A stretch of 63,384 nucleotides of DNA, the filler included, from Parasitella parasitica NRRL 2501 (taxonomy: Eukaryota; Fungi; Mucoromycota), in NCBI GenBank assembly GCA_025201805.1. It is 7 parts of 7 records of this genome, joined end to end, with 100 filler letters (N's around TTAATTAATTAA, not from the genome) between each part and the next. Parts side by side here need not be neighbours in the genome. Positions count along the whole stretch, not along the records: positions 36,389 to 63,384 come from MU619372.1; 6 more parts are not named here. One strand, 5' to 3'. Of the stretch, positions 42,942-61,656 are shown piece after piece (positions within the stretch are counted from its first letter, which is position 1; each line of letters begins with the position of its first letter). Under the pieces are notes generated by a model. That model was not told the DNA's origin. It saw nothing but the letters and a program-made list of their open reading frames with translations, and made no database searches. The translations under genes and the position numbers were made by a program.

Positions 42942-45900
42942 TTAAAAGTTATTCAAATTGGTGGGATGAGTGTGGGCATTGTAAGCATTGATCTTTTCTT
43001 TCCCAGAGACTTGAGATAACATGCCTTTGTCTTGCATATTCTCGTTGCCAAGTATCTTTCCTATAGTGTTCTACTATATAGGCTTAGTGTCATATACCAA
43101 CTACACATTAACACCTGTATATTACCTGAATTGATCCACGTCGGTGTTCACTTCTACCATTCGACAACGTGCTTTTAGTGGGAGCATCTGCATGAGGTTG
43201 TTCGTTTAATTTAATAAAGTTAACTTCACCGTTATCAGCAACATTAACAGTTCCAACAGGCTTCAATGTATGCACGTCAGGGACTCGAGCGTAATCTTGT
43301 CTTGCAGAACCAGTAGCTGCCGGATTCCCATTATTAGTGATTATGAAACCTCCATTTGGATGCTGCAGTTGCTGGACTTGGTGGCTAGGTACAGCAGAAA
43401 CATTATTGGAACCAGTAGTGGAATTATTGGCAGTACCGGCTGTGGTGGCAGGCATGGAGCTATTATTTTTCTCAGTAGCCGTTAATGTTTGGTTCTTAAA
43501 AGCTTCGGCGGCAGACATGCGACGTCCATCCTTTGATTTCTTGTCGGACCTGACACTCAAACGGCGGAAAGCAGACTTGATTCCTTCGGTCAAACTTGAT
43601 TTATGCTTGAGTTCGGGGTTTTGAAAATCACGAGCGCTATCTTTTACTTCATTTGGTCGAGAAGCAATTGCAATTCCAGAGCCAACAGCAGCAGCGCCGC
43701 CAGAAGCAGCGGCACCGCTAGCAGCAGTATTGTTACCAGTACCAACGGCAGGAGACGGTACAATGCTGCCATTTATGGCACGAGTGCTACTAAAGCTATC
43801 CTTGGAACGAGCCATGTTGCCAGGGACTGGGGTGCCTGTGGAACCTGCAATGATGGGAGAAGCAAGGCCTTCAGTATCAAGGTTTTGCCTCTGGTTAGGC
43901 ACAAATCCAGCAACAACAGGAGCAGGACCAGTACTACCAGATTGAGGATGCAGAGTATCATTGGCACGATCCTTTGGAGTTTGTTGAAGGTTTTCAGGAA
44001 GATCAGCCGTTTCGGTGTTGCCGGCAATGATGGGAGCAGGACCAATACTACCAGTTTGAGGATGCAATGCGTCATTAGCCGGATTCTTCGGAACTTGACC
44101 ATCAAGAGTATGCATCTGCTGAGGATGAGCGTTATTATCGTTAGCAGCACCAGCTAAAGGTTTTTGATCTACAGTATGATCTAAAGGTAACGGATCGATA
44201 TGTAAAGAATTATCCTGATTGTTACGAACGGCAGAATCATTAGATGTATGTTTGCTACGATCATGTTGTTGAGAGCCCAAGATTCCACCGACAGCAGCAG
44301 CAGTGCCTGCAACAGCGGGAATGCTTTTATGAGTATCAGATGGACCAAGTCTGGGCGATTCTGCATAACGAGGAGTGCTGTTTTCAGGCGTCATACTACG
44401 AGGAGTAGTGCGATACACATCGCAAATATCATTCGTACGATAATTAATTGTTGGGTTACCAGAGCTGATCATATTTTGTGTAGCTCCTTGGGCATTAGTA
44501 CGATAAACATCTCGAATATCATTTTCATAAACTGCAGTTGTAGGAGAGTAATTTTTATCAGAAATTTCATCAGAATTTACGCCTTGCGCGTTGGTACGGT
44601 ACACGTCTTGAATATCATTCGGTGAAAGAGAACGTTCAGGAGTGACACCTTGAGCATTAGTCTGATAAACAGCATTGATGTTGTTTGATTCTGGGGTGGT
44701 GATTTGACTTCTGCGGCCAGTACTAGTACTATTATGAGAACTTGTGGATTTGTTAGATCGAGCACTACTCTTGCGGTTAAGGCCAAAAAGTCCACCTGTA
44801 GCAGTACCAACCCCAGCGCCAACAGCAGCATCACTGAGGGCATTGTTGGTAGAGGAAGCATCCATGGGCGTGTGCCGATTTTGGGGAGCTACTGGAGCAG
44901 GGGCTGCGGTCTTGGGAACTTGACCCTCTTCCAAAGTTGAATCGCCCAAATCGGCTCTCTTGATAGGTTCAGTCAGTTCAATCGCTGGGACAGCGTTTGA
45001 GCCTTCAGAATGTCCAAGACCATCAGACCTAGCACCAGTGTGATCCTCGTCAATGGGTTTCTTGTCAAGCGAGTGACGACGAATAGCATCTGCATCAATA
45101 GGTTCGCGGTTGAAGGCTGCAATACCAGCACCTGTTCCAATTGCACTGGCAGCGCCAATTGCAGCACCATCAGTGACGCGGTGAGAACCAGCTGGGCAAG
45201 AGCCAGCAGTGATAGCATCTGAATCTATTCCCTCGGAATCATGAATGCCGCTGAAGTTCGACCCTTGATCAGTGCTGACAGGATGAGGATTGATTGAATC
45301 AGCTCGAGTTAAATCGTTGTCCATTATAGCACAAGATTTGATGGCGTTTCTAGCATCAGAACAAGACCCTTGTTTATCGCAGTAGAAGCTAGGATTCTGA
45401 CCGTGAATTGACGGCTCTTGGACATGAGCACAATGAGAGTTAGTATCATCTTCCTTTTCCTCGCAGATACAATCTTTTGTATAGAAGCAGGGATTCTGAC
45501 CATGGATAGAGGGCTCGTGGGTGCAATTAGTGGCATCCTTCTTTACAGGGTTCTGGGGAAGAATATAGCCAGCATTTTGTGTGCTTGAGACATTTTTTTG
45601 AGAAGCATCAGGCCAGGCACTTGGCATCTTAGTGTCATTTAGCTCAGATGGATCAGACTGATGTTGACCGTTGGTGCCCAGTAAAACAGCTGCAGCGCCT
45701 GAAGCAACAGCTGCGGCTCCAGAGGCAACGGCAGATGCCATGCCGGACAAGCCGTTCATTCCAGTTGCATAATCATCTGTTTGCTTGTTGGTTTGATCGA
45801 GAGAACTTATCTTGCTAGAAGGCAAAGATGCTGAAATTTTTTTATCAGTGGAAAGTGCACTTCCACTAATCGGTACATTGACATTAGCAGCAGTAGACGT

Positions 45901-46524
45901 GGCGGATTCCGGAGAGTGTACACCTCCCAAACCAGAGACAGAAACGCCATTCTGAACACCAGAGCCGCTCCCCTCATTGTTCAATGACTCACGTCTTTTC
46001 GTAGAACCTCTTCTTTGATTACCAGCAGATGGCAAAGTAGTGATAGAACCTCGGTGCAGTCCTGCTTGATCCAAAGTAGAGCGAGATGTGGCAAAGGGTT
46101 CGGTAGTATTTGAATCCCCAAAGAAAGCGACGTCTTCCTCATGGGTTGACTGGGATTTAGTTGCATACCCAGGAGGAGGAACAGCGCCAGTTGCAGTACG
46201 ATCTTTGTGAGCTATCATATCGTCAGAACCACTGACAAGATCAGAGCTTTGGTTGGATCTGCCCTCTGGATTAAGAATATAGCCGCCAAAATCACTTGGG
46301 AAAACGTTGGTTGGTTCACGCTGAGGTTCAGCATGAGAAGTTTGGTCGATATGAGAAGACTCTTGCTCATGACTCTGATTGCTACTCAATGGAGCACTTT
46401 CGACATTATTCGATCTGGATGGTCATTATGATTAACCGATGCACATTACATGTACGCCATAATATAACTACCTGTTATTATCATCAATTTCAATATCTTG
46501 ATTGTTGTTACGATTGTTGAACAT
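42942..46524 (-). CDS. Large hydrophilic, low-complexity protein with internal repeats and C-terminal CsbD-like motif (3 exons; main exon ~43126-46414)
   Basis: 1093-codon open frame. An upstream exon MFNNRNNNQDIEIDDNN(R) joins in phase via the GT-AG intron 46415-46471. The last exon gives RRGSIQ/NTIGKILGNENMQDKGMLSQVSGKEKINAY..NNF*. Confidence 0.75.
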
Positions 46525-47160: not shown

Positions 47161-48361
47161 TTAGTTGATTTGCTTCAATAAAGCAGCCAACTCGGCAGAG
47201 ACCCTATCACCAACTTCAATAGTTGATTTGTCTCCCTTGAGGTCGCGGGTATGGAATCCGGAATCTAAAACTTTACGGACAGCTTCTTCGATGGCACGAG
47301 CCTCATTCTCGAACCCAAGCGAATATCTAAGCAGCATAGCAGCACTAAGAATAGTAGCGATGGGATTGGCGATACCTTGGCCAGCAATATCAGGAGCGGA
47401 GCCGTGGATAGGCTCATAAACACCGAGACATTTACCCTTACCGTCAGGAAGGCCACTAAGAGAAGCTGAGGGTAACAAACCGAGAGAACCGACAATGACA
47501 GACGCCTCATCTGAAAGGATGTCACCAAACATGTTTTCAGTTAAAACGACGCCATTGAGACTGCTGGGACGTTGAACCATAGCCATCGCACATGAATCTA
47601 CAAGTTGGTGGTCGTATTGAAGCTCGGGAAACTCCTTTTCCATGGTCTCGGTGACAGTTTTGCGCCAGAGACGAGATGTAGCCAAAACATTGGCTTTGTC
47701 AACAGAGTGAATCTTACCAGGAGGTGATTGCTTCTTAGCTAAAAGAGCGGCTAATCGAGTAACACGCTCAACCTCTTCTCTAGAGTAAGGAAGAGTATCG
47801 TAGGCTGTAGAGAAATCAATTTAGTAAGAATAAAGTTGATTCTCTTCTTTGCCTTCCATCCAAAACCGATTACTTACCTTTGCCATCTTCACCAGCTTCC
47901 TGTCGATCCCCAAAGTAGATACCACCGACCAATTCACGAACAAATACGAAATCAGTACCTTGAACAACATGATCTTTTAAAGGGGAAAGACCTGTAAGAC
48001 TTTCGGAGGCAAATGAAACAGGGCGCAAATTAGCATACAAATCCAAAGCTTTTCTGAGCTTCAAGAGACCTTGCTCAGGACGAGGACCACTACCAATCTG
48101 AGCACCAGGAAGACCGCCAACAGCACCCAAAAGAATAGCATCGGCTGTCTTGCAAGCATCAAGAGAGGAGTCGGGAAGAGGTTCACCAGTCTTTTCCATG
48201 GCATCTAAACCGATCAATTCATATTTAAAGTCGAATTCAGCATCGAGTGCTTGGGCTCTGTGTTCAGCTACAACCTTTAAGACTTTGACAGCTTCAGCTA
48301 CAATTTCGGGGCCCACACCATCACCGGGGAGACACACGATAGAAATTTTTCTGGGAGACAT
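47161..48361 (-). CDS. LEU2: 3-isopropylmalate dehydrogenase; intron 47805-47877
   Basis: [101 protein letters not shown]. Confidence 0.97.
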
Positions 48362-48454
48362 GGATTACGGTTAATTTTGTTTGAAACTTACGAAAACAAA
48401 AAGAAAAAAAATGCAACTGTTACTTAAAAATACGCTTTATAACTATCTAAAAAA

Positions 48455-48502
48455 ATGAATCATTGCCATTGTAGCCAATCATCTAGATGAGTCAATGATT
48501 GG
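48455..48502. promoter_or_regulatory. LEU2 promoter: Gcn4/CpcA-type site TGAGTCA (48488-48494) between inverted CCAAT boxes, plus variant TGAATCA (48456-48462)
   Basis: Sequence ccaatcat-ctagaTGAGTCA-atgattgg, 95-140 bp upstream of the ATG; the TGA(C/G)TCA consensus is established for Gcn4/CpcA. Confidence 0.6.
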
Positions 48503-49706
48503 GTGTCTATCAGAGTGACAAAGAGGAGTGCTCTTAAAAGACAGGTTGCCTGAGGTTTAATCTTATGAACAGCAATATTTGGGTTCATCTTCTTTGGTTT
48601 ATGCGAATTTGGCTGCTGATTGCGCGCTGCCTTTCATAAAAAACCTAGTTTGCACTTTCTGTATACTAATTTGCATTACAGATAGAGATTGGTAAGTTAA
48701 CTGAAATACTCAGAGGTGATCAAGATGTAATTGATATATCTGATGGACGAAAATCTTCTAGCCTGAGGAACTTTGCTTTAATAACAGCTCGATTATTTCG
48801 CAAGAGTGTATTTCTATTTTCTTCAAGGTCAACACGACTTAGTGTGTACGATTTTAGCCTATCAACAAAAGCTGTTCATCTCACGGGTTTAAATTTTCTA
48901 CATAATAAACATCTTCAACGCATTTTAAGCTCAAAATGTTCAAAAATACAAACCAGGTTTTTTTTTTTTTTGCCAAATTCAGATCAAAGATACTTTTTTT
49001 AAAAAAAAGCTACTATATAGAATTTTCTGCTCTATAAGATAGTGTGATAAAAAAAAGTAGTTTGCTAAAAATTTTTGGAGAAAATCATTTAATTAAATTG
49101 TTTCTAGCCCAGTATTTGATTTTTATACAGTTCTCTGTCAAATTTAGTTGATGCTTACAATTCATTAACTTTCTATCTTTGTTCTGACTCACAATGTTGT
49201 GTATTCCAAGGTCGTTTTTGGGACTAAAAATAAAAATCAATATTTTCCTGGATTTTCATGAGGGTATAGTTGGGATTTAGGGCAGTTCAAAAGTGCTGAC
49301 TAAAATATCCGAATTTTAAGATTTAATCAGCTTGAACCTAGGGAATTATCTCCTCTAGCCTAAAAACCTGGGGTATTCAATCACGAATCTCAGAAACTGT
49401 TCCCATAGAATAAGTTCTACGGTTTTATGTTAGTGATAGATTTTTTCATTAAGGTATGGATTCTAACAAATGTCCTTGCTAATGATGATTTTGCATGCTT
49501 TGTTGAGTTTGCACAACTTCCACAGTCTGACATGATGTACCATGTCTGGACGATACCGTGACAACAAATTTAATAATTTATAACAATTTTTATTCAAAGT
49601 GGATGAAACAATTTTTTTAAAAGGGTGAAGTGTATACAGAAAGGCGAAATTGGGTTATACATTACTAATAAATAGAAAAAAAAAATTTTTTTCATTTGTA
49701 AATGAT

Positions 49707-50955
49707 TTAGTTCTTGCCGGCGTTTTCAGGTCTAAGTTGGCGAACGGTCTTGCCAGTTCTCCAAATTTCTGATTCACGAATTTCTCTGAGTTCTTCTTCA
49801 AGCTTCTCACGGTAATCGGGTTGAGAGTTGCGATCAAGAGATCGAGCAGTTTCGGAACCATCCTTGACAGATCTGTAAAGATCTTCAAAGACAGGCTTGG
49901 AAGCATCATGGAAAGGCTTCCACCAATCAAGAGCACCACGCATAGCGGTTGTAGAGCAGTTAGAGTACATCCAGTCCATGCCACGTTCACCGATCAGAGG
50001 ATAAAGCGACTGAGTAGCTTCCTCAACAGTCTCATTGAAAGCTTCAGAAGGAGAGTGGCCATTGGCTCTTAAAACTTCATATTGAGCTTGGAACAAACCT
50101 TGAATAGCACCCATCAAGACACCACGCTCACCGAATAAATCAGAGTAAACTTCCTTTTCAAAGGTAGTTTCATACATATAACCTGAACCAATACCAATAC
50201 CTAAAGCAATGGTGCGCTCTTTGGCGTGGCCGCTAGCATCCTTGTAGACAGCGAAAGAGGAGTTTATACCACGGCCTTCCTGGAAAAGACGACGTACAGT
50301 GAAACCGGAGCCCTTGGGGGCAACGAGAATAACATCAACACCCTCGGGAGCCTCAATGTTGGTTTGATCCTTGTAAACGATAGAGAACCCATGGGAAAAG
50401 TAGAGAGTCTTGCCAGGAGTCAAAAGAGGCTTCATTTGGGGCCAGATTTCCTTTTGGAAAGCATCGGACAAGAGGTTCATGACAACAGTACCCTTTTCGA
50501 CGGCATCCAAGACAGGGAACAAGTTCTTTCCGGGAACCCAACCTTCTTCAATGGCTTGCTGATAAGTCTTACCTTCACGTTGGCCGATAATAACATTGAC
50601 ACCATTGTCGCGCAAGTTTAAAGCTTGACCACGACCTTGAGGGCCGTAACCGAGAACAGCAATAGTATCATTCTTGAAAGTTTCGAGCAGCTTTTCCTTA
50701 GGGACATCAGAGCGCTCGTAAACGGTCTCTTTTGATCCTCCAAAGTCAAGTGTCTTCATGCCACGAGATTGCATGATAGGAACAATCTGCTTTGGATTAA
50801 TACTTTGGATAATTGTGTTGACACTTTATAAAGTAACTTACGGTAGCAGCCTTAACAAAGGATTGCTTGATAGCAGGTCTGGCAGCGGCCACAACAGTGG
50901 GGCGGGCCATAGTGGCAGCTCTACGGAGAGCAGTAGCAAAGACGCGAGAGGACAT
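49707..50955 (-). CDS. ILV5: Ketol-acid reductoisomerase, mitochondrial; intron 50787-50841
   Basis: Exon 1 MSSRVFATALRRAATMARP.. (mitochondrial presequence); GYGPQGRGQALNLRDNG, LLSDA, YFSHGFS, VAPKGSG, EVYSDLFGERGVLMG, CSTTAMRGALDW, VRQLRPEN. Confidence 0.97.
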
Positions 50956-51699
50956 TTTTCAATTGATATAATTTGAAAAAAAGAAGAAAGAGAAAGAAAA
51001 AAAATAAAAAAAGCCTAAAGCGAAACTAAAAAGTGGTTTTATACACGAATTAGAGTAACTCTAAATGCCCATCTTTCATTCGTGTGTTCCATTTGCAATT
51101 AATGATTCACTGACAAATGCAACATTTGTCTTGGTTAAGGGTATTTGTTACTTGCAAGTTATGAACAGTCTGCCAATAAGGTTGGATGTGTGTAGAGTGT
51201 GATACATTTTGGATCTGTCTATCCGATTGGCTGGATTAAACTTCTTGTTGATCTAAAAGGTAAAATGTAGATGGTGCTTTTTTGGTAAGCCGCATGTACA
51301 AGCTAAAATAAGATGCGATATGTTCCCGATTTTGCATTGTGATTAGCACGGATCAGTATCTACCCAAGGGAAATACCTAAAAGCCAGTTACTACGTTAAA
51401 TGCCTCTAACTTTTTGCGCATCACAAACTCCCTGCATTGCAATTTGGCGCATGCAAAATTCATAGCAATTACAAGTTTTATACACTCTTCTGCATCAATA
51501 TTCAACAATCGACAATCGACAATCGTTTATATTGGATGTCAAATAAACATTTTATAAAAATTATGTCGCAGATCTTCTAATTGATGCAACAGAATTTACA
51601 CAAGATGACATTCATTTTCTTGCAAATATAATTCGGTTTGATCTCTGCGATACGCCAGTTTTTTTTTGTCAATTATTTAAATTTGCTTTAGGCTCATAC

Positions 51700-52480
51700 A
51701 ATTTTCGTATTTTTAATGAAGGTATCTTGCCTATTAGTCTTTCAAGTTTTCCGAGACATATCTCAAAATTGTTAACAGAGTGCTCAGCAATGTTAAAGAG
51801 ATTTTTACTGCCAACGGCTCCGCTTGCTTCGTGGATTCTAGCTTTACATCCTCTATATCAGCAAATAAACTTTTTTTAACTGCATTTTTGAGGAGTGACC
51901 AAAAGTTGTCAATTGGAATAAGTTCTGGAGAGTATAGAGGAAGTTATACTGCCCTGTAGCCTCTAGCTTTCGTTACTTTTGTTATCTCGTGTAAAGTGTG
52001 GAGTGGTGCGTTATCCGCTACAATATAAAATATGATTGTTTAAGGGAACTTGTAACAATTCATCTAATATTTTAGAAATGAATCTCATGTGGTGGCCAGT
52101 ATTTCTCTTGATATAGCCATCAACCTTCACTTTCTTGGGCTTCATAGGCTTCCTTATTTGTGGGTCGCTAATAAGACTCCCAGAGTAGTATTTGAGAGAA
52201 AACGAACAGTAGGTGCTTCAACAATTGCTAGTGTACCGCGAATTAAATGAGCATTGGGGCTCCCCATAAGAATACTGAAGCTGGCTTCGTCCGCAAAAAC
52301 GTAGTTATAGCGCTTTTCACGGTCTTTGCCCAAGGCTGTAATGAAATCCACTTCACAGCTAGATTGCAATTGTAAAAGATAAAATTTCCACAGCTTAGCT
52401 CTTTAATGTGATAGAAAACAGCCTTATGATTGTCGAAATGGACATTATATTTTCTACGAGCTACTACTTCGATAATTTCC
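51700..52480 (-). pseudogene. Degenerate Tc1/mariner (IS630-like DDE) transposase between ILV5 and ILV2
   Basis: Minus-strand fragments YVFADEASF, ADNAPLH and GYRAV*LPLYSPELIPIDNFWSLLK correspond to the D, D and YSPxLxPIE motifs; stops and frameshifts. Confidence 0.8.
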
Positions 52481-53212
52481 AACTACTTTCTCCATTTTGA
52501 TATCAAGCTCTTCTGTGGGCTTAGCCGGAAAGCCTCTCTGGTAAGATCGGTGCTAGGTTCATTGTCATTAAGGTTTCATTTCCCTGCTCTTCCACAACGT
52601 TTCCCTTAGCATAAACAAATCTTGGTATATTCTCGGTCTATCTCACTATTGGACCACGATTATCAAACGTGTGCTACGGTACTGAATAGTGGTAAACAGC
52701 TTTATAAAATTTATATCAAACCTGTCATTCTCCCTTTTTTCTTTTCTTTCAAGCAATTTTTATTTGTTGGACGCCGTTATCGCAGGCGCTCCCTGAAGCT
52801 CGGGTTTAGCAGGTCCAGGGCGTGATGTGCTTACAATCTACAGTCTGGGAATTTTATTTAACAAAGAGAACTATACTGTATTTATTGCTAAAACCATTTT
52901 AAGAGTTCGGGATAGCAAAATAGGTTTCCAAAACCATCATATTTAAATGAAGAATAGACCCAAGCTACCTAATATTACGCTTTAGTTAATAATTACATGA
53001 CAGTTGTTATTCGTCGCTTTATTGGCTCATAACAAAATGTTAGAGTCTGACCAGGTTCCCATTTGGCTGATAATGATAAGAAGGAGCTCCGATATGTACC
53101 CCACATTTGGTTTGGTGTGAGCAAGTGGGAATCATATTGATTATGAGCCAATCAAACAGATAATTTTGCGTTACCTTGGCATACTATGCAATTGACCAAA
53201 GAGCCTGATTTG

Positions 53213-53430
53213 ATTGGTTTGACTCACAATATATCCCTTAAGCAAAAGATATTGCCCATTTGCACATGTTGGTAAACAAGATGAAAGAATAAAAGCCATG
53301 GATTCTATGTGAAATGAGATCTAGTAATGTCAAGTGGAATTGCGGCAAGATAGAAGGATTTCCATCCAAATAGATGGGCGACCATAAAGCATCTATCAAA
53401 AACTGATGGTTCTGGTTTGTATTGACTCAT
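53213..53430 (+). promoter_or_regulatory. ILV2 promoter: Gcn4/CpcA-type TGACTCA at 53220-53226 and 53423-53429, with adjacent ATTGG (CCAAT box)
   Basis: Two perfect consensus heptamers within 500 bp of the ATG at 53706. Confidence 0.6.
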
Positions 53431-53705
53431 TGCTTTTGATTCGCCGGCATAAAAGATGATTCGTCCTACATACGAACGTTAATTTTTTCTTTGACTCTAG
53501 ATCTTTTTTGATTGATTTGTATATAATTGAGATAATCATATTCTTCCTTGCTTCTCTTTTCCTTTTTTCTTTTTGTTTTCCATTGAATTTCTCAAGTAGA
53601 AAATTTAACCGCACTTCTTTGATTTAGTCATCTCCATAGCGGCCCATCTTACATTTTACCCTTTCTCTTTTTTTTTTCCAACTTATAATAACTACACATT
53701 AAGAA

Positions 53706-55923
53706 ATGCTTGCGTCTTCAACAGCGAGAAATTCTGCAAAATTATTCAGCTCATCATATCCTAGAGCCAGTCTTGGTCTTTATCGCCACCGAGCTGTTAT
53801 TGCTTGTGCTGGTATCCACACTACACACAAATCAAAGAGTGCCGTTGCCTCACCGTAAGTTTGCCCAATGCAATCGTATAAATAGCCAATTAACTCGGAT
53901 ATTATAGAACCATCTCACATTCAGAGCGCTCTGCTGTCGCTCTAGAAAAATCACCCAAGACGGTCTCGCCTCTCAGCAATAAAAAGTCTCAAGCTGTTGA
54001 AATGGATGATTCGTTTGTTGGTATGTCTGGTGGTGAAATCTTTCACGAAATGATGTTGAGACATGACGTTAAGCATGTCTTTGGCTACCCTGGTGGTGCC
54101 ATTCTGCCCGTTTTTGATGCTATTCACGAATCAGAGTATTTCAAATTCATTCTCCCTAGACATGAACAAGGTGCTGGACATATGGCTGAAGGTTATGCCA
54201 AAGCAACGTATGTTGATCTTTTTTCTATGATAACAATATTTTTTTTTTTTTTTTACTAATTAAATGCTGGTAGTGGTAAGCCTGGTGTTGTCCTTGTAAC
54301 ATCTGGTCCTGGTGCTACAAATGTTGTCACTGCCATGGCCGATGCTTTAGCTGACGGCGTCCCTCTTGTCGTCTTTTCTGGTCAAGTTCCTACCTCTGCT
54401 ATTGGTACAGATGCTTTTCAAGAAGGTATTTACGATTGTACAGAGTAATTTTGATTGGATCCCTAATCGTTTTTATAGCTGATGTCGTTGGTATCACCCG
54501 TAGCTGTTCAAAATGGAATGTCATGGTAAAGGATATTGCAGAACTTCCTCGTCGTATCAATGAAGCTTTCACCATTGCTACCAGTGGTCGCCCTGGTCCT
54601 GTTCTCGTTGATCTCCCCAAGGATGTCACCGCTGGTGTTCTTAAACGTCCTATTCCTACTAACGCATTGATCCCTCAGCGTCCCTCTACCATTCCCAACA
54701 CTGCTGTAGGCGCTTTCACTGAAGAAGCACGCTCTAAACCTCACCCTGTTTTATCTCGTGCCGCCGATTTGATCAACAACGCTAAAAGACCCGTCATTTT
54801 TGCTGGTAATGGAATTTTTGGCCATCCTGACGGTCCCAAGCTTTTGAGACAACTTGCCAACCATGGTAACATCCCTGTAACTACAACTCTTCACGGACTT
54901 GGCGCATATGATGAAATGGACCCTAAATCTCTCCATATGTTGGGTATGCATGGTTCAGGTTATGCCAACTTGGCTATGCAAAATGCTGATGTTATCATTG
55001 CTCTTGGTGCTCGTTTCGATGATCGTGTTACTGGGTCTATTCCTACTTTTGCTCCCGAAGCCGTCAAAGCTGCCAAAGAAGGCCGTGGTGGTATTCTTCA
55101 CTTTGAAATCATGCCCAAGAACATCAACAAGGTTATTGATGCTACTGAAGCTATTGAAGGTGATGTCACAGAGAATTTGAAGAAACTCGTTCCTCATATC
55201 AAGAGCACCCCTCGCAAAGAATGGCTTGATCAGATCACTACCTGGAAGAATGCCTATCCATTTTACTACGAAAAAACGACCAAGGATGACGAAAAACTGA
55301 AGCCTCAACAATTAATCGAGGAACTTGACCGTCAAACGAGAGATATCAAGGATAAGGTCACTATCACCACTGGCGTTGGTCAGCATCAAATGTGGACAGC
55401 CCAAATGTTTAGGTGGAATACCCCTCGTTCTCTTATCACGTCTGGTGGTCTCGGTACAATGGGTTACGGTCTTCCTGCTGCCATTGGTGCCAAAGTTGCT
55501 AAACCTGATAACATTGTCGTCGACATTGACGGCGACGCCTCTTTCTCTATGACAGCTATGGAATTAGCTACTGCAGCTGAATTCAACATTGGAGTAAAGG
55601 TATTGCTGCTGAATAACTCATTCCAAGGTATGGTGAAACAATGGCAAGATCTCTTTTATAAGGAAAGATACTCTGGCACCATTATGAAGAACCCTGATTT
55701 TGTCAAGCTTGCTGAAGCCATGGGTGTCAAGGGTATTCGTGTTACCAAGGCTTCTGAAGTCGAAGCAAAGATGAAGGAGTTCTTGGAGCACGATGGTCCT
55801 GTTATAATGGATGCTGTTGTCTGTAAAAAAGAAGTTCTTTACCCAATGGTTCCCGGTGGAAAGCCTTTGCATGAATTTATGCTTCACCCTACCATTGCTG
55901 CTCGCAACAAAAAGAAGGATTAA
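53706..55923 (+). CDS. ILV2: Acetolactate synthase catalytic subunit, mitochondrial; introns 53855-53907, 54208-54273, 54426-54478
   Basis: Presequence [18 protein letters not shown]..; [93 protein letters not shown] (ThDP motif), GMVKQWQ. Confidence 0.97.
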
Positions 55924-56763: not shown

Positions 56764-57201
56764 TGTGGTATTTAAGTCAGAAAATGGAGATTGACAGAAA
56801 AAATTTTCATCTGCAAAGGACATCAGGAATGAATATTAAGGGTCCGAATTTGCCAACTCTTTGAGCAGCACAACAGCATCGCCCGTTATAGCTGTCTGCA
56901 GAGACATACAGTCATTTTGCAGTTTCTAAAAAAAAAAGTTCAATTAAATGATAAAGTTCATGGTGATCGTAATAATATATATTAGTGTTTCTGCTAAGAA
57001 ACCTTTTATCTCTGATAAAAGCTAAGAAGTTTCTGAGAGATGAGAAATGTCTTCCTGAAGATTTCAAGTGTCGATAGTTGAAATTAATGCGTTGTTGTTT
57101 TTGGTTTCGGAGGGCGTAATCTGATATAAAAGTTTATAAAAATCAGAAGATTGTTTGAACCTGTCAATTATTACAGTTTCCTTTTGATATTTTATTTTGA
57201 A

Positions 57202-58428
57202 TTAGACACTACGTTTATTATCCATTTTTTTCCAGCGATTGTATGTATTCTTGAGACTAAAATGGGTGGAGTAATTTTTGAAATAGCCTTTGCGGCGGCC
57301 ATCACGATAGCAAGTTTGCCAATTCATCCTATCGTCCCCAATTTGTTCCATGTAATCCTCAATATACCGCCAATTTTTGCTGCTCTCTTCGGCGGTTGCA
57401 GAATCGTTGATTGATGATGGCTGTTCAGATGGGATGGTTCGCAGGTGAGATGAAGTTTCTGGAATGCTGTTTGTTGGCGACGGGCTTCTTGATTCATGGG
57501 CAGATGAGGTGGTAGACAGTGGTATAGGTGATGATGATCCACTTGATACGAATTTGCGCTTGCATGTTCTTAAGAAAGTCATCCCCTCCTTCAAATAATC
57601 GATAGTTCGCTTCTTCGTGTTAGTATCCTGGACATCGTCGTCAAGCATGTCTATGGCCTTGTGATATCGCGATTCTGCATCTTCAATGACACGTAAAAGG
57701 CAACCTGCCACTGATTCATTCATCGTAATCTGATTTTGAAAAATGTGCTTTGCGTTGGAGTATAAATGCTGAATAAAGGGATCACGATGATGAGCGTGAT
57801 CGGCCAAGGATTGCCTCTGTTCGATGAAAAATGAGCCAAGAGCGACAATTGGATCCAATGGTGTGTTCTCCATATGCGAAGAGATTGATTCTTTGCACAG
57901 GATGTAACACTGATTTGCCCAAGGATAGCATGGCATCTTGAAAAAAAATGGCTTTGACTTGTTCTTGGTTGCTTTGTTCATAATCTGGCTACTGCATTCG
58001 TGTATGGCAACTACAAGAACGACAGGTGATACACCATATTCAGTGACAATTTCTTCACAGTATCGCACAACACGGTGCAGGAAATTGTTGTCAACAGCGT
58101 ATTGTATTTCGACGAGTACAGGTGGCATATCTTTTGAGTTATTAGTGGCATACAAGACATCAGACTTCGTTCCGTTTGCCCATTCAGTGAGTCTTGGCCT
58201 ATACTGGTCAATGGCCTTTCGACCTGATACAAAAAAATAGGAAGAGCAAGTTAGTGTACAATGAATGACTTCCAGTAGAGCAGGTAGGAACTTACCAATC
58301 ACTGCTTCAATGATGGCGCTTTTCACTTCATCGTTCTGTAAAATGTGTTTGTTCATTAGATCTGTTCCGGGACGGTTGGCAAACAAAGGCAAAGAGAAGA
58401 GCGCATCGGTTTCACCCTCTCTTGTCAT
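57202..58428 (-). CDS. Uncharacterised protein with PD-(D/E)XK / Rpn-like nuclease motif; in-frame 72-bp intron 58224-58295
   Basis: ATG at 58428 (MTREGETD); GTAAG..CTAAC..CAG intron; motif KSDVLY-x9-PVLVEIQ-x6-FLHRVVRY; Ser-rich linker; small Trp/Tyr-rich basic C-terminal domain. Confidence 0.65.
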   Translation of the reverse strand: MTREGETDALFSLPLFANRPGTDLMNKHILQNDEVKSAIIEAVIGKFLPALLEVIHCTLTCSSYFFVSGRKAIDQYRPRLTEWANGTKSDVLYATNNSKDMPPVLVEIQYAVDNNFLHRVVRYCEEIVTEYGVSPVVLVVAIHECSSQIMNKATKNKSKPFFFKMPCYPWANQCYILCKESISSHMENTPLDPIVALGSFFIEQRQSLADHAHHRDPFIQHLYSNAKHIFQNQITMNESVAGCLLRVIEDAESRYHKAIDMLDDDVQDTNTKKRTIDYLKEGMTFLRTCKRKFVSSGSSSPIPLSTTSSAHESRSPSPTNSIPETSSHLRTIPSEQPSSINDSATAEESSKNWRYIEDYMEQIGDDRMNWQTCYRDGRRKGYFKNYSTHFSLKNTYNRWKKMDNKRSV

Positions 58429-58804
58429 GACGAAAAAAACTGTTGTCGACAAGGTTAGAAAAATAAAGTTATCGACCACAACCCTTTGGGGGTTTTTTTA
58501 AAGAAGGCGGCTTCTCATTGGCTACCATATCTTGCCGACAACAGCGATATCGGCGATTGTTAAGAGTCCCTGGAAGAGAACTGTAGTTTATCTTCAACCT
58601 TACTCTCCGTTCCTGAATCCAATTAAAGGTTTTTGATCAAGTCAACAGACACACTTACACCCAGAATCACAGATGTTTGTCGATTGACAACCGTAACCTT
58701 TTTTAAAGACCACCTTGACCTGAAAAATATAATGTAGATGGCTTATTTCACAACACATTCTCTTAATATTTAAACAAAACATTTACTCTTTTTCTATAAA
58801 TATA

Positions 58805-59495
58805 GACCAGCAATCATGGGTGTGGTCAAGACGATTTTCTTTAGAAACATTGCCCAGCTCTTGCAAGTTAAGAAGAATAAATCCTGCATATGGGCCACGC
58901 ACGTTTACAACGCTATTGAATGCTATAGTTTGCTTTATCCTGTCAGAACAAAACGAGACAGAGTTTATAGAAATACTAAACAAAGTTTGTTTAGAGGTAT
59001 TTTGACGAAGATATCATTAAATTCATAAATCAAAGGACAGTTTACAAGAAAATCCTGCTGTTAAACTGCTTGCGCTTATACACAACACGAGAAAGGCTTA
59101 AAAATGCCAATGAAAGATATTTCAAAGACTTTCCAAGCAAAGAAGTAAAATCCAAGACTATTGATGCTTTTGTAGGTACTTCTGGCATTGCAAGAAAAGC
59201 GTTAAAAGAGAAACGTCTTCTAGAAGATTTATGTTTGAAAGTCGGTATACCTGCAATGCTATTACAAAATATGAGTATCAGGCTGAGCTGGGTGAATGGA
59301 ACCATTGTGTGTGTTGTAGAAGTAGATGAGGATAATATGCGTTTGATAAAGTTTTCTGACAATGATAAAGAGCATATTTGCATCCACAATACACAAAGCA
59401 CAAAGTGCAACTATCGATTGTGTTGGGATATTCCTCGACAGCATGTTAACCCACGGTCAGCTCTACGTTGCGATGTCAAGGGTCAAAAAGGCCTC
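58805..59495 (+). pseudogene. Degenerate C-terminal half of PIF1-family (Helitron-type) helicase
   Basis: PAIMGVVKTIFF..IAQLL, LYPVR, LRLYTTRE, LCLKVGIPAMLLQNM..WVNGT, FASTIHKAQSATID, HGQLYVAMSRVK; frameshifted. Confidence 0.8.
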
Positions 59496-61656
59496 TAACC
59501 TGTTAGAATTGCAAAACCCAAACAGAGACTTAATAAAGAAATATTCAATGTTTTTAATTTACACTTGCTAAATTCTTGTCCTTCTTACTTTTTGTAGTCT
59601 TTATTTTTTTTCCTTCCTTTTACAATTCAATCAAAATTACTTTCCTCAATTTATTCGATCTAAAAAAGCTAAACGCATTACATGAAAGAACATCCGTAAA
59701 AATGATATGAACAAGGCACAACAATCAATGCGGCCACAAAGTACTTCATAGAAGGTATTTATTGGATCCCTCTACCGGATATGTACGCTAATAAGTCTTA
59801 TTTATGTCTTTGGGACTTCATAAATTTCTATATAGATAATTTTTCATGAATGGGTGTGTTATCCTGGTGGCAGATTGTTTCATTTTCTCTGGCCTTTTTT
59901 TATACCCTCAGTTGATTTGGCGTTCTATATCCAGTTGCACATTAGAACAGCTAGCCAAACATGTGCCATTTTTTTATGATATTGGAATGGTTCAAAAGTG
60001 TGCGCCTTTGCAAAACCATATAAAATTTTAAGCGCCTAATTTTTTTTTTTTTTTTTTTTTTTTTTTGTCTGCGCAAACTTCATGTGTTATTGTCAGAAAA
60101 AAGACAAAAATTGTAACAAAACAATATTCAGCAATCTCAAACACAAAAACAAGTAATTCAAAGTGATGTATTAGACTATAAGGCACCTTTTGAGTGCATT
60201 TCTGCATAGCTTGGAGCAAGTGTTTTGTACTTTTTAAGTCGACATCAGATACAGGGAACGACTTTTCTGACTTTTTTTTTTTTTTTGGAAAAGTACTTTT
60301 CAAAATCGGAGCGTGTGATCGTCAGGCCAGGTACAGACATGCAAGTTCTACTATTATAGAGCCAAGAAGTACACCATTTACCAAAATAGGTTGCGATTGT
60401 TTTCTTCTTGAATTGGGTAAGCTATGGCTTCTCAAAGCTAATGCTTTCTTGGAAAATATACCATTTTTCTTTGATGGCGGAGATTAAACGCGTCCAAAAC
60501 CAGGAAAAAAAATTCTTTCAGAAACTCAATTTGGACATTTCGAAACCAAAATTACTCTTTTGAGGCAAGATATCATCTTCTGATACTATGCATACCACGG
60601 CTGTCAGTCTATGGTAATAGCTGTATTTTTGGGCCCTCTACACAATGGTGTCATTTTCATAATCCCCGTATGCTTGTGGAAGAAGTTCTGTCTAGAAAAC
60701 CTCAAGAACAGATCAAGAGGAAAAAGTCAATATTTTGCTTAAAGAGAGCGCATTTCCAGTCTTTCAGATCAAGAAATGACCTTTTACGATCATTTTCCTC
60801 TAATATATGATATAGTAAAAAGTTGCATTTTTGGGGTCAAAATCGAGGATAATGCGTAATCGACAATTTTGGATGTGTGGATACAAGGAAAAAATCGAAA
60901 AAATCCGTGATTTTGCATTGAAAAAAAAATCATGCTCAAATTGCACCAAAATCATATATAATATAGTCCTTTCCCAATGGATACTATTTCCGATGTTTCT
61001 AGGGCACTTTCGAATATGAAAATCAATCAAAAAATGGCACATAAAGCTAAAGTTCTTGCTTTTAAGCTGTAAAAAAACATCTATATGGAGATGATATCAC
61101 GTCAATATCAATTCTAGTACATACCACAGCTTTATAAAGAAAGTATTTTCGATGCTACAAGTATACCTTTCTTCATAGTAAAACGATAAAACAGGTGTGG
61201 CTCATCTTCTCTCAGCTTTTATCAGAAAAAGAAGGCTTGTTATCAGAAAACCTCATATATATTATGACATTTATCATTTACTTGAACTTTTTTTTTCAGA
61301 AACCATAAAACAACTGCGTATAAACAAGGTATCTCATTTAAAAACTTTGCAAAGTACTTTGCTCGTTTTCGAATGAAGTCAGCAGCGTTATCTGTAGAAA
61401 TGCGAGGGCCGCGACCTGCTTGACTTCCGAACCCGCCGAATGTTGATTCAGCGAACGTGGCTCGACGGTTTGAAGATGAAGCAGGAATTTCAATGCTCAC
61501 GCACACACAGACCGTGTCTTGGCCTGTTTGGCTGTGACATCATTTGCATTCATTTAAGGCGGGACTGAAACAGGTCTCTTTTCTTCTTTGCTTTTGGAAT
61601 TCCTCTTTTCCCTTCCTCTTTACTCTACGCACATAAAGCTTGAATTTTGACAAAAA

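Follow-up and report, generated by a model that had tools for sequence, protein, structure and literature searches.

Three genes for the synthesis of branched-chain amino acids (BCAAs), LEU2, ILV5 and ILV2, lie side by side in the genome of the fungus Parasitella parasitica, which raises the question of what brought them together and what has kept them so. The window, meaning the whole stretch of DNA analysed, comprises 63,384 nucleotides of the NRRL 2501 assembly (GCA_025201805.1), and the genes fall in its part from MU619372.1. The locus probably represents an ancient fungal BCAA gene cluster built around a divergent ILV2/ILV5 promoter, in the form, devoid of ILV6, that it takes in Mucorales.

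Gene content and organization

The three genes occupy a stretch of 8.8 kb that includes no further gene (Table 1). LEU2 shows an Iso_dh match on each exon and scores 464 bits against the TIGR00169 leuB equivalog (cut-off 353), while falling under the respective cut-off of every other Iso_dh equivalog (isocitrate, homoisocitrate and tartrate dehydrogenases). ILV5 carries KARI_N and KARI_C, qualifies as a class I ketol-acid reductoisomerase (KARI) and reaches 340 bits against the TIGR00465 ilvC equivalog (cut-off 226). ILV2 contains TPP_enzyme_N/M/C and scores 758 bits against the TIGR00118 acolac_lg equivalog (cut-off 538), with catabolic AlsS models far lower. All introns are of the GT..AG type, and the reading frames of all three genes are undisrupted. 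At every residue, the LEU2, ILV5 and ILV2 models are identical to KAI8637510 (P0389), KAI8637511 (P0131) and KAI8637512 (P0381) of P. parasitica, respectively, and these accession numbers are consecutive.

Both ILV2 and ILV5 possess N-terminal extensions, rich in Arg/Ser/Ala (about 85 aa ahead of the TPP_N domain) in the former and in Arg/Ala/Ser in the latter, which are putative mitochondrial presequences. Their products would accordingly be mitochondrial and catalyse the first two steps of the common pathway. LEU2 bears no such extension, so its product, the third enzyme of the leucine branch, is presumably cytosolic. A preliminary description of this DNA had recognized three intact, adjacent, intron-containing genes of eukaryotic type, with ILV5 and ILV2 head-to-head and LEU2 in tandem behind ILV5, and the present models bear it out in each of these respects.

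The same description called the arrangement operon-like and co-regulated. A polycistronic unit is rejected because ILV2 lies on the strand opposite to ILV5 and LEU2; co-regulation is considered below from the shared promoter elements. A 1.35-kb spacer parts ILV5 from LEU2 and carries a promoter-like module at -127 of the latter; each of the three would be a separate, spliced, monocistronic gene. Three or more contiguous non-homologous genes of one pathway are one mark of a fungal metabolic gene cluster, and three are found here. For about 10^4 genes, the chance that a given triple is consecutive is estimated at roughly 10^-7; since the arrangement also recurs in many genomes, chance is negligible as an origin of the adjacency.

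Table 1. Features of the LEU2-ILV5-ILV2 locus (positions along the window)
Feature	Position	Strand	Details	Evidence
LEU2, 3-isopropylmalate dehydrogenase	47161..48361	-	375 aa	Pfam, splice model, protein identity, TIGR00169
LEU2 exons	48361-47878, 47804-47161		stop included	
LEU2 intron	47805-47877		single, 73 nt	
ILV5-to-LEU2 spacer	48362..49706	-	contains LEU2 promoter	motif scan
CCAAT-TGAGTCA-ATTGG palindromic module	48475-48502		127 bp upstream of LEU2 ATG	
Second TGACTCA of ILV5-to-LEU2 spacer	49185			
ILV5, ketol-acid reductoisomerase	49707..50955	-	397 aa; cluster copy, paralog A	Pfam, splice model, protein identity, TIGR00465
ILV5 exons	50955-50842, 50786-49707			
ILV5 intron	50787-50841		single, 55 nt	
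Divergent ILV5/ILV2 intergenic region	50956..53705	.		blastn against M. circinelloides, M. hiemalis and Rhizomucor loci; three-species alignment
ILV5-proximal conserved block	50956-51315		part of divergent region	
Lineage-specific insertion	51316..53083	.	1.77 kb; seen only in the window	blastn
ILV2-proximal conserved block	53084-53705		part of divergent region	
ATTGG-tt-TGACTCA composite (CCAAT box and Gcn4/CpcA-type site)	53213..53226	+	486 bp upstream of ILV2 ATG	
Second TGACTCA upstream of ILV2	53423..53429	+	283 bp upstream of ATG; within conserved island of ~60 bp	
ILV2, acetolactate synthase (ALS) catalytic subunit	53706..55923	+	681 aa	Pfam, splice model, protein identity, TIGR00118
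ILV2 exons	53706-53854, 53908-54207, 54274-54425, 54479-55923			
ILV2 introns (n=3)	53855-53907, 54208-54273, 54426-54478			

Intergenic regions and candidate regulatory elements

In the region from which ILV5 and ILV2 diverge, M. circinelloides lacks the insertion between the two conserved blocks and has 479 bp of spacer at that position. It had been described as a dead Tc1 relic. The insertion itself is real, but the Tc1 identity is not borne out: its ORFs are short and broken, a Pfam search of the pieces at E<=10 returned neither a transposase nor any other family, and a search for inverted repeats found weak AT-rich ones only, leaving a transposon origin unproven.

Sequence elements of the Gcn4/CpcA type, associated with cross-pathway control, accompany all three genes. 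The composite upstream of ILV2 is invariant in the three-species alignment of Parasitella, M. circinelloides and M. hiemalis, and both TGACTCA sites lie, equally invariant, inside footprint islands among these three Mucoraceae. A TGAGTCA-N2-5-CCAAT composite upstream of ILV2 is kept in Mucor, Rhizomucor and Absidia, and the palindromic module also occurs upstream of LEU2 in M. circinelloides (locus L003, 12043). Across the cluster spacers of eight lineages, TGASTCA was observed 15 times versus 2.4 expected (Poisson P ~4e-8), at a density about 9 times that outside clusters, and an unbiased k-mer survey returned it as the top non-low-complexity 7-mer, present in 7/8 lineages; in the Thamnocephalis spacers, zero sites were found.

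These elements point to a shared cis input, TGASTCA with CCAAT, in the ILV2/ILV5 region and at -127 of LEU2, through which amino acid starvation would raise the expression of all three genes. The factor involved may be of the Gcn4/CpcA type, and co-regulation of LEU2, ILV5 and ILV2 is suggested on the strength of these motifs. Because TGASTCA is expected upstream of amino acid biosynthetic genes whether clustered or not, it supports shared regulation and not a need for linkage. Moreover, the Parasitella insertion sits between ILV5 and the TGACTCA sites; this separation is evidently tolerated, which counts against the reading of an ancient, selected cluster.

Conservation across early-diverging fungi

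Approximately 15 genomes, all from outside Dikarya and the chytrids, were inspected directly. ILV2(-)/ILV5(+)->LEU2(+), in the order and orientation of the window, was read from the loci of three M. circinelloides assemblies, M. hiemalis and Rhizomucor pusillus; in the last, the surrounding genes are others, namely HIR3 on the upstream side and C2 and Methyltransf_16 on the downstream side. Protein accession order further suggests the same cluster in Fennellomyces (KAI8143912/13/14, consecutive) and M. ambiguus (GAN09344/46), a single gene separating ILV2 and LEU2 in Benjaminiella, and LEU2 adjoining ILV5 with ILV2 three accessions off in Mycotypha. Absidia repens and Phycomyces nitens have a reduced form, ILV2/LEU2, with ILV5 missing from the middle. 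Beyond Mucoromycotina, the block reads ILV2(-) ILV5(+) ILV6(-) LEU2::LEU1(+), with a LEU2::LEU1 fusion, in Actinomortierella wolfii; ILV2(-) ILV5(+) ILV6(+) LEU2(+) in Thamnocephalis; ILV2(-) ILV6 ILV6' ILV5(+) in Linderina; and LEU2(-)/ILV5(+) in Basidiobolus. The ILV2/ILV5 core is thus linked in four subphyla of two phyla (Mucorales, Mortierellomycotina, Zoopagomycotina and Kickxellomycotina). The linkage is not universal: ILV2 was not found within 10 kb of LEU2 in Umbelopsis isabellina, and five Glomeromycotina species, Entomophthora and Calcarisporiella have ILV2 and ILV5 on separate contigs. Mucor, Benjaminiella and Rhizopus possess a second ILV5 paralog, which is unclustered.

The KARI, ALS and LEU2 gene trees follow taxonomy, and Thamnocephalis, a mycoparasite of Mucorales, falls outside Mucorales in them, so that the cluster genes look vertically inherited. 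Both the mapping of the linkage and the trees had been proposed in the preliminary description, which would have abandoned its reading had the linkage been confined to this assembly or no better conserved than the unrelated neighbours FAP7 and VPS26, with co-expression lacking as well. The linkage extends well beyond this assembly and persists while flanking genes change, far better kept than those two, which by tblastx were matched only at Mucor, Absidia and Umbelopsis loci, a part of Mucoromycotina.

It is unlikely that the proximity is simply ancestral synteny not yet broken, unselected and without regulatory meaning. Such persistence does affect other genes, as Mucor and Absidia both keep VPS26 nearby, Rhizomucor and Absidia likewise share Methyltransf_16, and FAP7 adjoins LEU2 in Umbelopsis; the cluster has also decayed in several lineages. 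Furthermore, Mortierella alpina regulates these genes little at the transcript level: by qRT-PCR, BCAA genes, clustered or not, respond to BCAA supply by no more than about 4-fold (PMC8880518), which counts against strong cluster-specific co-regulation. Yet the flanks all differ between subphyla, sharing zero non-BCAA Pfam families, around a divergent ILV2/ILV5 pair that is constant in Mucorales, Mortierellomycotina and Zoopagomycotina and whose orientation Kickxellomycotina also keep, with ILV6 inserted between. The lasting neighbours are always pathway partners (ILV6, LEU2, LEU1) and never random genes, and transposon-sized insertions, which in the window have entered both the spacer and the flanks, left the genes together. 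Unrelated flanks around a constant core suggest linkage conserved beyond background synteny, and the same arrangement in two phyla with differing neighbours argues for an old primary-metabolism cluster, probably held by selection.

Origin of the cluster

In the proposed course of events, Mucoromycota and Zoopagomycota would descend from a common ancestor in which one intergenic region already served the divergently transcribed ILV2 and ILV5, and in which ILV6 and LEU2 lay beside ILV5, joined in some lineages by LEU1; loss of ILV6 from the block in Mucorales would have left the form seen in the window. The divergent promoter is probably the reason why the ILV2/ILV5 pair resists breakage, and selection presumably accounts for the persistence of the linkage.

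Alternatively, pathway genes might have been relocated under selection for co-regulation and assembled independently in Mucorales, Mortierellomycotina and Zoopagomycota, as could be read from the differences in composition and internal order: ILV6 varies in strand where it sits between ILV5 and LEU2, in Linderina it comes between ILV2 and ILV5, and Basidiobolus LEU2 is head-to-head with ILV5. Such convergence is nevertheless very improbable, given that the divergent ILV2(-)/ILV5(+) orientation is identical wherever ILV2 is linked, that the direction from ILV5 to LEU2 is common to Mucorales, Thamnocephalis and A. wolfii, and that parsimony favours one origin with local rearrangements thereafter.

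An early fungal or even earlier eukaryotic ancestor could also have taken up a whole bacterial operon, ilvB-ilvN-ilvC-leuB-leuCD, with introns, promoters and targeting acquired later. The gene content of A. wolfii (ILV2, ILV5, ILV6, LEU2::LEU1) equals that of Bacteroidota ilvB-(ilvN)-ilvC-leuC/D-leuB loci, leuA aside, and likewise matches B. subtilis ilvBHC-leuABCD except for leuA; ilvC of Bacteroidota and Planctomycetota also resembles fungal KARI to an unusual degree (63-68% identity). However, beside the closest ilvC genes found, identity drops to 37-41% between ilvB and ILV2 and to at best 44-48% between leuB and LEU2, against 60-70% for the fungal proteins compared across phyla; hence, the clustered genes do not share the history of KARI. 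For ilvN, no match emerged at 1e-10. Some Bacteroides loci gave lower leuB matches, which seem to represent a different Iso_dh gene. With gene order and strands also unlike an operon, ILV2 being divergent, descent from a bacterial operon appears improbable. The scan, which used two peptide patterns and the best 80 loci, is a partial test, and the earlier proposal of assembly by rearrangement instead of operon transfer is consistent with it but not proven by it.

A bolder form of the ancient-cluster reading is nearly as likely as not: the window may show one remnant of a five-gene 'supercluster', ILV2/ILV5-ILV6-LEU2-LEU1, that the ancestor shared by Mucoromycota and Zoopagomycota, or possibly that of all terrestrial fungi, already had, and that selection on the shared, TGASTCA/CCAAT-controlled divergent promoter has held for several hundred million years. 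If so, it would rank with the most ancient eukaryotic gene clusters of anabolic primary metabolism, and lineages that lost it (Dikarya, Glomeromycotina) could reveal what substitutes for linkage, such as Leu3.

Comparison with known systems

Bacterial ilv-leu operons, such as B. subtilis ilvBHC-leuABCD, C. glutamicum ilvBNC and the Bacteroidota loci (ilvB-(ilvN)-ilvC-leuCD-leuB), place the same enzymes side by side with the same pathway logic. They are polycistronic, intronless, on one strand and under leader/attenuation control, whereas each fungal gene is spliced and forms its own unit, two are divergent, and putative organelle targeting extensions are present; compared with the ilvB and leuB next to bacterial ilvC, the sequences show unremarkable similarity.

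In S. cerevisiae, ILV2, ILV5 and LEU2 reside on different chromosomes under Gcn4 control, to which Leu3 adds pathway-specific control. The enzymes and the Gcn4-type TGASTCA promoter elements are the same, but the yeast genes are dispersed and use Leu3, while the Parasitella genes are contiguous. Basal fungi are reported to lack both a Leu3 homologue and Leu3 sites in ilv/leu promoters (PMC8880518).

Closer in form are fungal primary-metabolism clusters, on which general reviews are available (PMC4347624, PMC4256263). They share with ILV2/ILV5-LEU2 adjacent non-homologous pathway genes, a bidirectional promoter core and a presumed benefit of co-regulation. Examples with divergent promoters are nitrate assimilation (niiA/niaD-crnA), GAL1/GAL10-GAL7, the DAL cluster and the BIO genes. 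Those provide for assimilation or catabolism that is needed under certain conditions, and for the most part they are limited to Dikarya lineages, unlike the present cluster, which belongs to an essential anabolic pathway with mitochondrial and cytosolic steps and spans two phyla of early-diverging fungi.

The nearest counterpart is M. alpina, another Mucoromycota fungus with orthologous ILV2, ILV5 and LEU2 (and ILV6) physically clustered, for which Sonnabend et al. 2022 noted ILV2-ILV6-ILV5 and ILV6-ILV5-LEU2 clusters in one sentence, without comparison across fungi (PMC8880518). That appears to be the only earlier mention, and conservation across phyla appears unreported. M. alpina has two partially duplicated clusters that include ILV6, whereas Parasitella has a single block without it.

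Gene content of the branched-chain amino acid (BCAA) cluster

The coding content of positions 47161-55923 consists of three genes only: LEU2, encoding 3-isopropylmalate dehydrogenase, ILV5, encoding KARI, and ILV2, encoding ALS. The identities, coordinates and orientations assigned to them in the preliminary description proved right by Pfam, NCBIfam, splice models and database identity. For the splice models, database orthologues were aligned to the DNA, and GT..AG introns that preserve the frame were chosen. The resulting LEU2, ILV5 and ILV2 proteins match KAI8637510, KAI8637511 and KAI8637512 at all residues, in agreement with the public annotation of Parasitella parasitica, where these accessions are consecutive. 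The NCBIfam equivalogs leuB, ilvC and biosynthetic acetolactate synthase large subunit score far above their curated cut-offs, and the models of related enzymes (isocitrate, homoisocitrate and tartrate dehydrogenases; catabolic AlsS) do not reach theirs. The cluster is not an operon, as ILV2 lies on the strand opposite to ILV5 and LEU2. Searches by tblastx with fungal ILV6 (ALS small subunit) and LEU1 regions detected neither gene on the 27-kb piece carrying the cluster.

Features of the cluster region and its flanks in the window
Feature	Position	Strand	Description
ORF beyond LEU2	43108-46389	-	1093 aa; Ser/Thr/Ala/Asn-rich; no Pfam domain
LEU2	48361 to 47161	-	Pfam Iso_dh on both exons; 375 aa; one 73-nt intron
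ILV5	50955 to 49707	-	KARI_N + KARI_C; 397 aa; one 55-nt intron
Spacer insertion	51316-53083		no counterpart in M. circinelloides (blastn)
Piece of spacer insertion	52154-52369	-	resembles DDE_3 motif, by eye only
ILV2	53706 to 55923	+	TPP_enzyme_N, M, C; 681 aa; three introns of 53, 66 and 53 nt
Stretch between FAP7 and VPS26	56900-60700		~4 kb, window-specific; gap ~0.6 kb in M. circinelloides
ORF in FAP7-VPS26 stretch	57202-58479	-	425 aa; no Pfam family
Fragment in FAP7-VPS26 stretch	59073-59498		Pif1 helicase 2B domain

In yeast, the first two enzymes of the pathway (ILV2 and ILV5) are mitochondrial and the LEU2 enzyme is cytosolic. The Parasitella ILV2 and ILV5 proteins carry Arg/Ser/Ala-rich N-terminal extensions ahead of the first domain and LEU2 has none, a pattern that fits the yeast locations and by which ILV2 and ILV5 would be mitochondrial and LEU2 cytosolic here as well.

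Linkage within Mucorales

The cluster is real and conserved, and its linkage is not confined to this assembly. Three M. circinelloides assemblies and M. hiemalis share the arrangement VPS26-FAP7-ILV2(-)-ILV5(+)-LEU2(+), in which ILV5 is the A copy. In Rhizomucor pusillus, a member of a distant Mucorales family, the order and orientation of ILV2, ILV5 and LEU2 are unchanged and the flanks differ, with HIR3 upstream and a C2-domain gene and Methyltransf_16 downstream. Accession order, which presumes that GenBank numbering equals gene order (as is true for Parasitella), indicates that Fennellomyces (KAI8143912/13/14), M. ambiguus and another Parasitella strain have the same triple, that a single gene separates ILV2 and LEU2 in Benjaminiella, and that two accessions separate ILV5 and ILV2 in Mycotypha. 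ALS and LEU2 genes share one contig in a dozen further Mucorales; in Absidia repens and Phycomyces nitens, ILV2 is head-to-head with LEU2, and ILV5 is missing from the middle.

A cluster restricted to Mucor was first suggested by ILV5 loci devoid of ILV2 and LEU2 in Benjaminiella, Rhizopus delemar and M. lusitanicus; these loci instead carry another ILV5 copy, paralog B, whose product is 400-401 aa long in Mucor and Benjaminiella. Both A and B are present in M. circinelloides, and the split between clustered A and B falls within the Mucoraceae-Rhizopodaceae clade of the KARI tree. A phosphoesterase gene adjoins paralog B in all three (retrieved loci L001, L002, L006 and L007), accompanied in Benjaminiella and M. 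lusitanicus by a Glyco_transf_49 gene. A Sulfate_transp/STAS gene occurs near both the Benjaminiella B locus and the Absidia cluster locus (L011), a shared neighbor hinting that the B locus is a duplicate of the cluster region minus ILV2 and LEU2. Separately, P0129, a genuine LEU2 protein of Helicostylum pulchrum, is placed in the 90%-identity cluster of the KARI protein P0001, a database artefact that presumably arises via a fused ILV5-LEU2 gene model and reflects their tandem adjacency.

Linkage in other subphyla

Beyond Mucorales, linked loci were found in Mortierellomycotina, Zoopagomycotina and Kickxellomycotina. Actinomortierella wolfii (Mortierellomycotina) contains ILV2(-), ILV5(+), ILV6(-) and a LEU2::LEU1 fusion (+); Thamnocephalis sphaerospora (Zoopagomycotina) contains ILV2(-), ILV5(+), ILV6(+) and LEU2(+) in a locus cut by the contig end; and Linderina pennispora (Kickxellomycotina) contains ILV2(-), ILV6(+), ILV6'(-) and ILV5(+). 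In addition, LEU2(-) and ILV5(+) are divergent neighbors in Basidiobolus ranarum. The gene identities at these loci are upheld by tblastn with the window exons.

The two ILV6 genes that separate ILV2 from ILV5 in Linderina (L015:7087-9064) are arranged tail-to-tail, and the second of them is shorter (214 aa). In A. wolfii, a stop-free 898-aa frame at L014:15403-18096 (+) comprises the C-terminal half of Iso_dh followed by Aconitase and Aconitase_C, and the called gene (1078 aa) covers LEU2 plus LEU1. Eleven gene models of Coemansia spp. (protein cluster P0309) combine Iso_dh with Aconitase. The domain composition of the A. wolfii and Coemansia genes suggests a fusion of LEU2 with LEU1 (IPM dehydrogenase-isomerase).

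Linkage has also been lost or is absent in places. ILV2 and ILV5 lie on separate contigs in five Glomeromycotina species, Entomophthora and Calcarisporiella. In Umbelopsis isabellina (L010), LEU2 adjoins FAP7, the gene flanking ILV2 in Mucor, and no ILV2 was detected within 10 kb of LEU2 by locus inspection and tblastn. Consecutive locus tags in two Umbelopsis annotations (INT43_007220/INT43_007219 and INT44_006049/INT44_006048) had pointed to ALS-LEU2 adjacency; since the two genes are not adjacent in U. isabellina despite these tags, the tags are not positional.

Flanking genes as a control

Among the genera compared, only Mucor keeps both FAP7 and VPS26 next to the cluster; Absidia retains VPS26 there, and in Umbelopsis FAP7 adjoins LEU2. 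No flanking Pfam family is common to different subphyla among the loci compared. Across subphyla, the divergent ILV2|ILV5 pair and its pathway partners stay while the flanks change. Because they outlast FAP7 and VPS26, the neighbors against which the preliminary description proposed to judge the linkage, the finding stands, and we strongly infer that the cluster has been kept by selection.

The ILV5|ILV2 spacer and other insertions

At 2750 bp, the divergent ILV5|ILV2 spacer of the window is longer than those of M. circinelloides (1465 bp), M. hiemalis (1389 bp) and Rhizomucor (656 bp). M. circinelloides has 479 bp in place of the spacer insertion, and both spacer ends are conserved (360 bp beside ILV5 and 620 bp beside ILV2; blastn), so this segment represents a lineage-specific insertion. 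It had been called a dead Tc1 relic; the insertion is real, but its Tc1 identity is unproven, given that no ORF piece within it has a Pfam match at E<=0.1 or even E<=10 and that no convincing terminal repeats were found.

Further window-specific insertions occur between FAP7 and VPS26, one of which includes the Pif1 helicase 2B domain fragment, which may be a Helitron-like relic. On the other side of the cluster, the ORF beyond LEU2 is part of a 1412-1465-aa gene that adjoins LEU2 in M. circinelloides (~70% identity); its counterpart is missing at that position in M. hiemalis.

Gene trees and origin of the cluster

In quick maximum-likelihood trees of KARI (56 sequences), ALS (26) and LEU2 (25), Mucorales, Umbelopsis and Mortierellomycotina each come out as a group, as do Kickxellomycotina wherever at least two of their members were included. 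The proteins of Thamnocephalis, a parasite of Mucorales, are 65-73% identical to those of the window and never nest within Mucorales; because of this low identity and the lack of nesting, host contamination and recent transfer are, as judged from protein sequence, excluded for its cluster.

An alternative origin is that the cluster is a relic of a bacterial operon co-transferred from a Bacteroidota/Planctomycetota-type source. A fungal KARI alignment was scanned against 185,579 bacterial and archaeal species genomes, a partial test limited to two peptide patterns. The best 80 loci (L016-L095) belong almost entirely to Bacteroidota and Planctomycetota, and their ilvC products are 60-68% identical to fungal KARI, as high as the identity between fungal phyla. 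These loci have ilvB upstream of ilvC, often with leuCD and leuB downstream, and no ilvN is detectable at 1e-10. However, the marked bacterial affinity of KARI is not common to the other clustered genes: across these 80 loci, the neighboring ilvB products show 32-41% identity to ILV2 (mostly 37-41%), and leuB products reach 44-48% at best with LEU2, which argues against co-transfer of an operon from those phyla. Assembly within a eukaryote rather than operon transfer, as originally proposed, is consistent with these low ilvB and leuB identities, although two peptide patterns make this a partial test. The contrast further suggests that the KARI gene has a separate, possibly horizontal, history relative to ILV2.

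Promoter motifs and proposed regulation

The ILV and LEU genes of Dikarya are known to be controlled through Gcn4/CpcA sites, and the corresponding motif TGASTCA was therefore counted. Cluster spacers of eight lineages, 15.6 kb in total, contain 15 copies where dinucleotide shuffles predict 2.4 (P about 4e-8); 111 kb of sequence outside the clusters contain 12. In an unbiased k-mer survey, TGACTCA is the top non-homopolymeric 7-mer (seven of eight lineages), and CCAATCAA(A) is among the top 8-mers. The Thamnocephalis cluster spacers have no TGASTCA. In the window, sites at -486 and -283 of ILV2 lie within two islands that do not vary among Parasitella, M. circinelloides and M. hiemalis, and the insertion sets 2.3 kb between ILV5 and these sites. 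The distal one belongs to a TGAGTCA-N2-CCAATCAAA composite that recurs in Rhizomucor and, spaced by N4, in Absidia. At -127 of LEU2 lies a CCAAT-TGAGTCA-ATTGG palindrome, which M. circinelloides shares.

Based on the TGASTCA enrichment, the invariant islands and the conserved composites, it is proposed that a cross-pathway-control-type bZIP factor and the CCAAT-binding complex would activate ILV2 and ILV5 through the divergent region between them, and LEU2 through a further copy of the module at that gene. Such a bidirectional promoter could be the constraint holding the ILV2|ILV5 core pair together; divergent pairs are reported as the best-conserved adjacencies in fungi. Co-regulation of the cluster genes is thus a prediction from promoter sequence. 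Three observations call for caution here: Thamnocephalis spacers contain no TGASTCA, the Parasitella insertion distances ILV5 from the sites, and in M. alpina BCAA supply alters the expression of clustered and unclustered BCAA genes alike by no more than about 4-fold (PMC8880518).

Significance and comparison with known clusters

Eukaryotic clusters for essential anabolic pathways are rare, and most known fungal clusters are young and serve secondary metabolism or conditional nutrient use. A BCAA cluster core kept in four subphyla amid reshuffling is a natural system for asking why genes remain linked in eukaryotes, with a shared bidirectional promoter, a chromatin domain and dosage balance as candidate reasons; its enzymes act in two compartments, and Mucor is genetically tractable. 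A phylum-spanning anabolic cluster is noteworthy and testable for fungal genome evolution, and the LEU2::LEU1 fusion and the bacterial-like fungal KARI pose questions on how the pathway was assembled in fungi. On the applied side, ILV2 and ILV5 serve as targets for antifungals and herbicides, mucormycosis is caused by Mucorales, and lipid and peptide production in oleaginous Mucoromycota is limited by BCAA flux.

This kind of cluster is not unprecedented, having been noticed once, in Mortierella alpina, where (in yeast names) ILV2-ILV6-ILV5 and ILV6-ILV5-LEU2 clusters were described, together with the lack of Leu3 in basal fungi (Sonnabend et al. 2022, PMC8880518). No other report was found in the full-text literature outside subscription journals, including Wisecaver et al. 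2014. Relative to that description, three points appear to be new: the persistence of the cluster in both Mucoromycota and Zoopagomycota while the flanks turn over, its inferred five-gene ancestral content, and the conserved promoter module.
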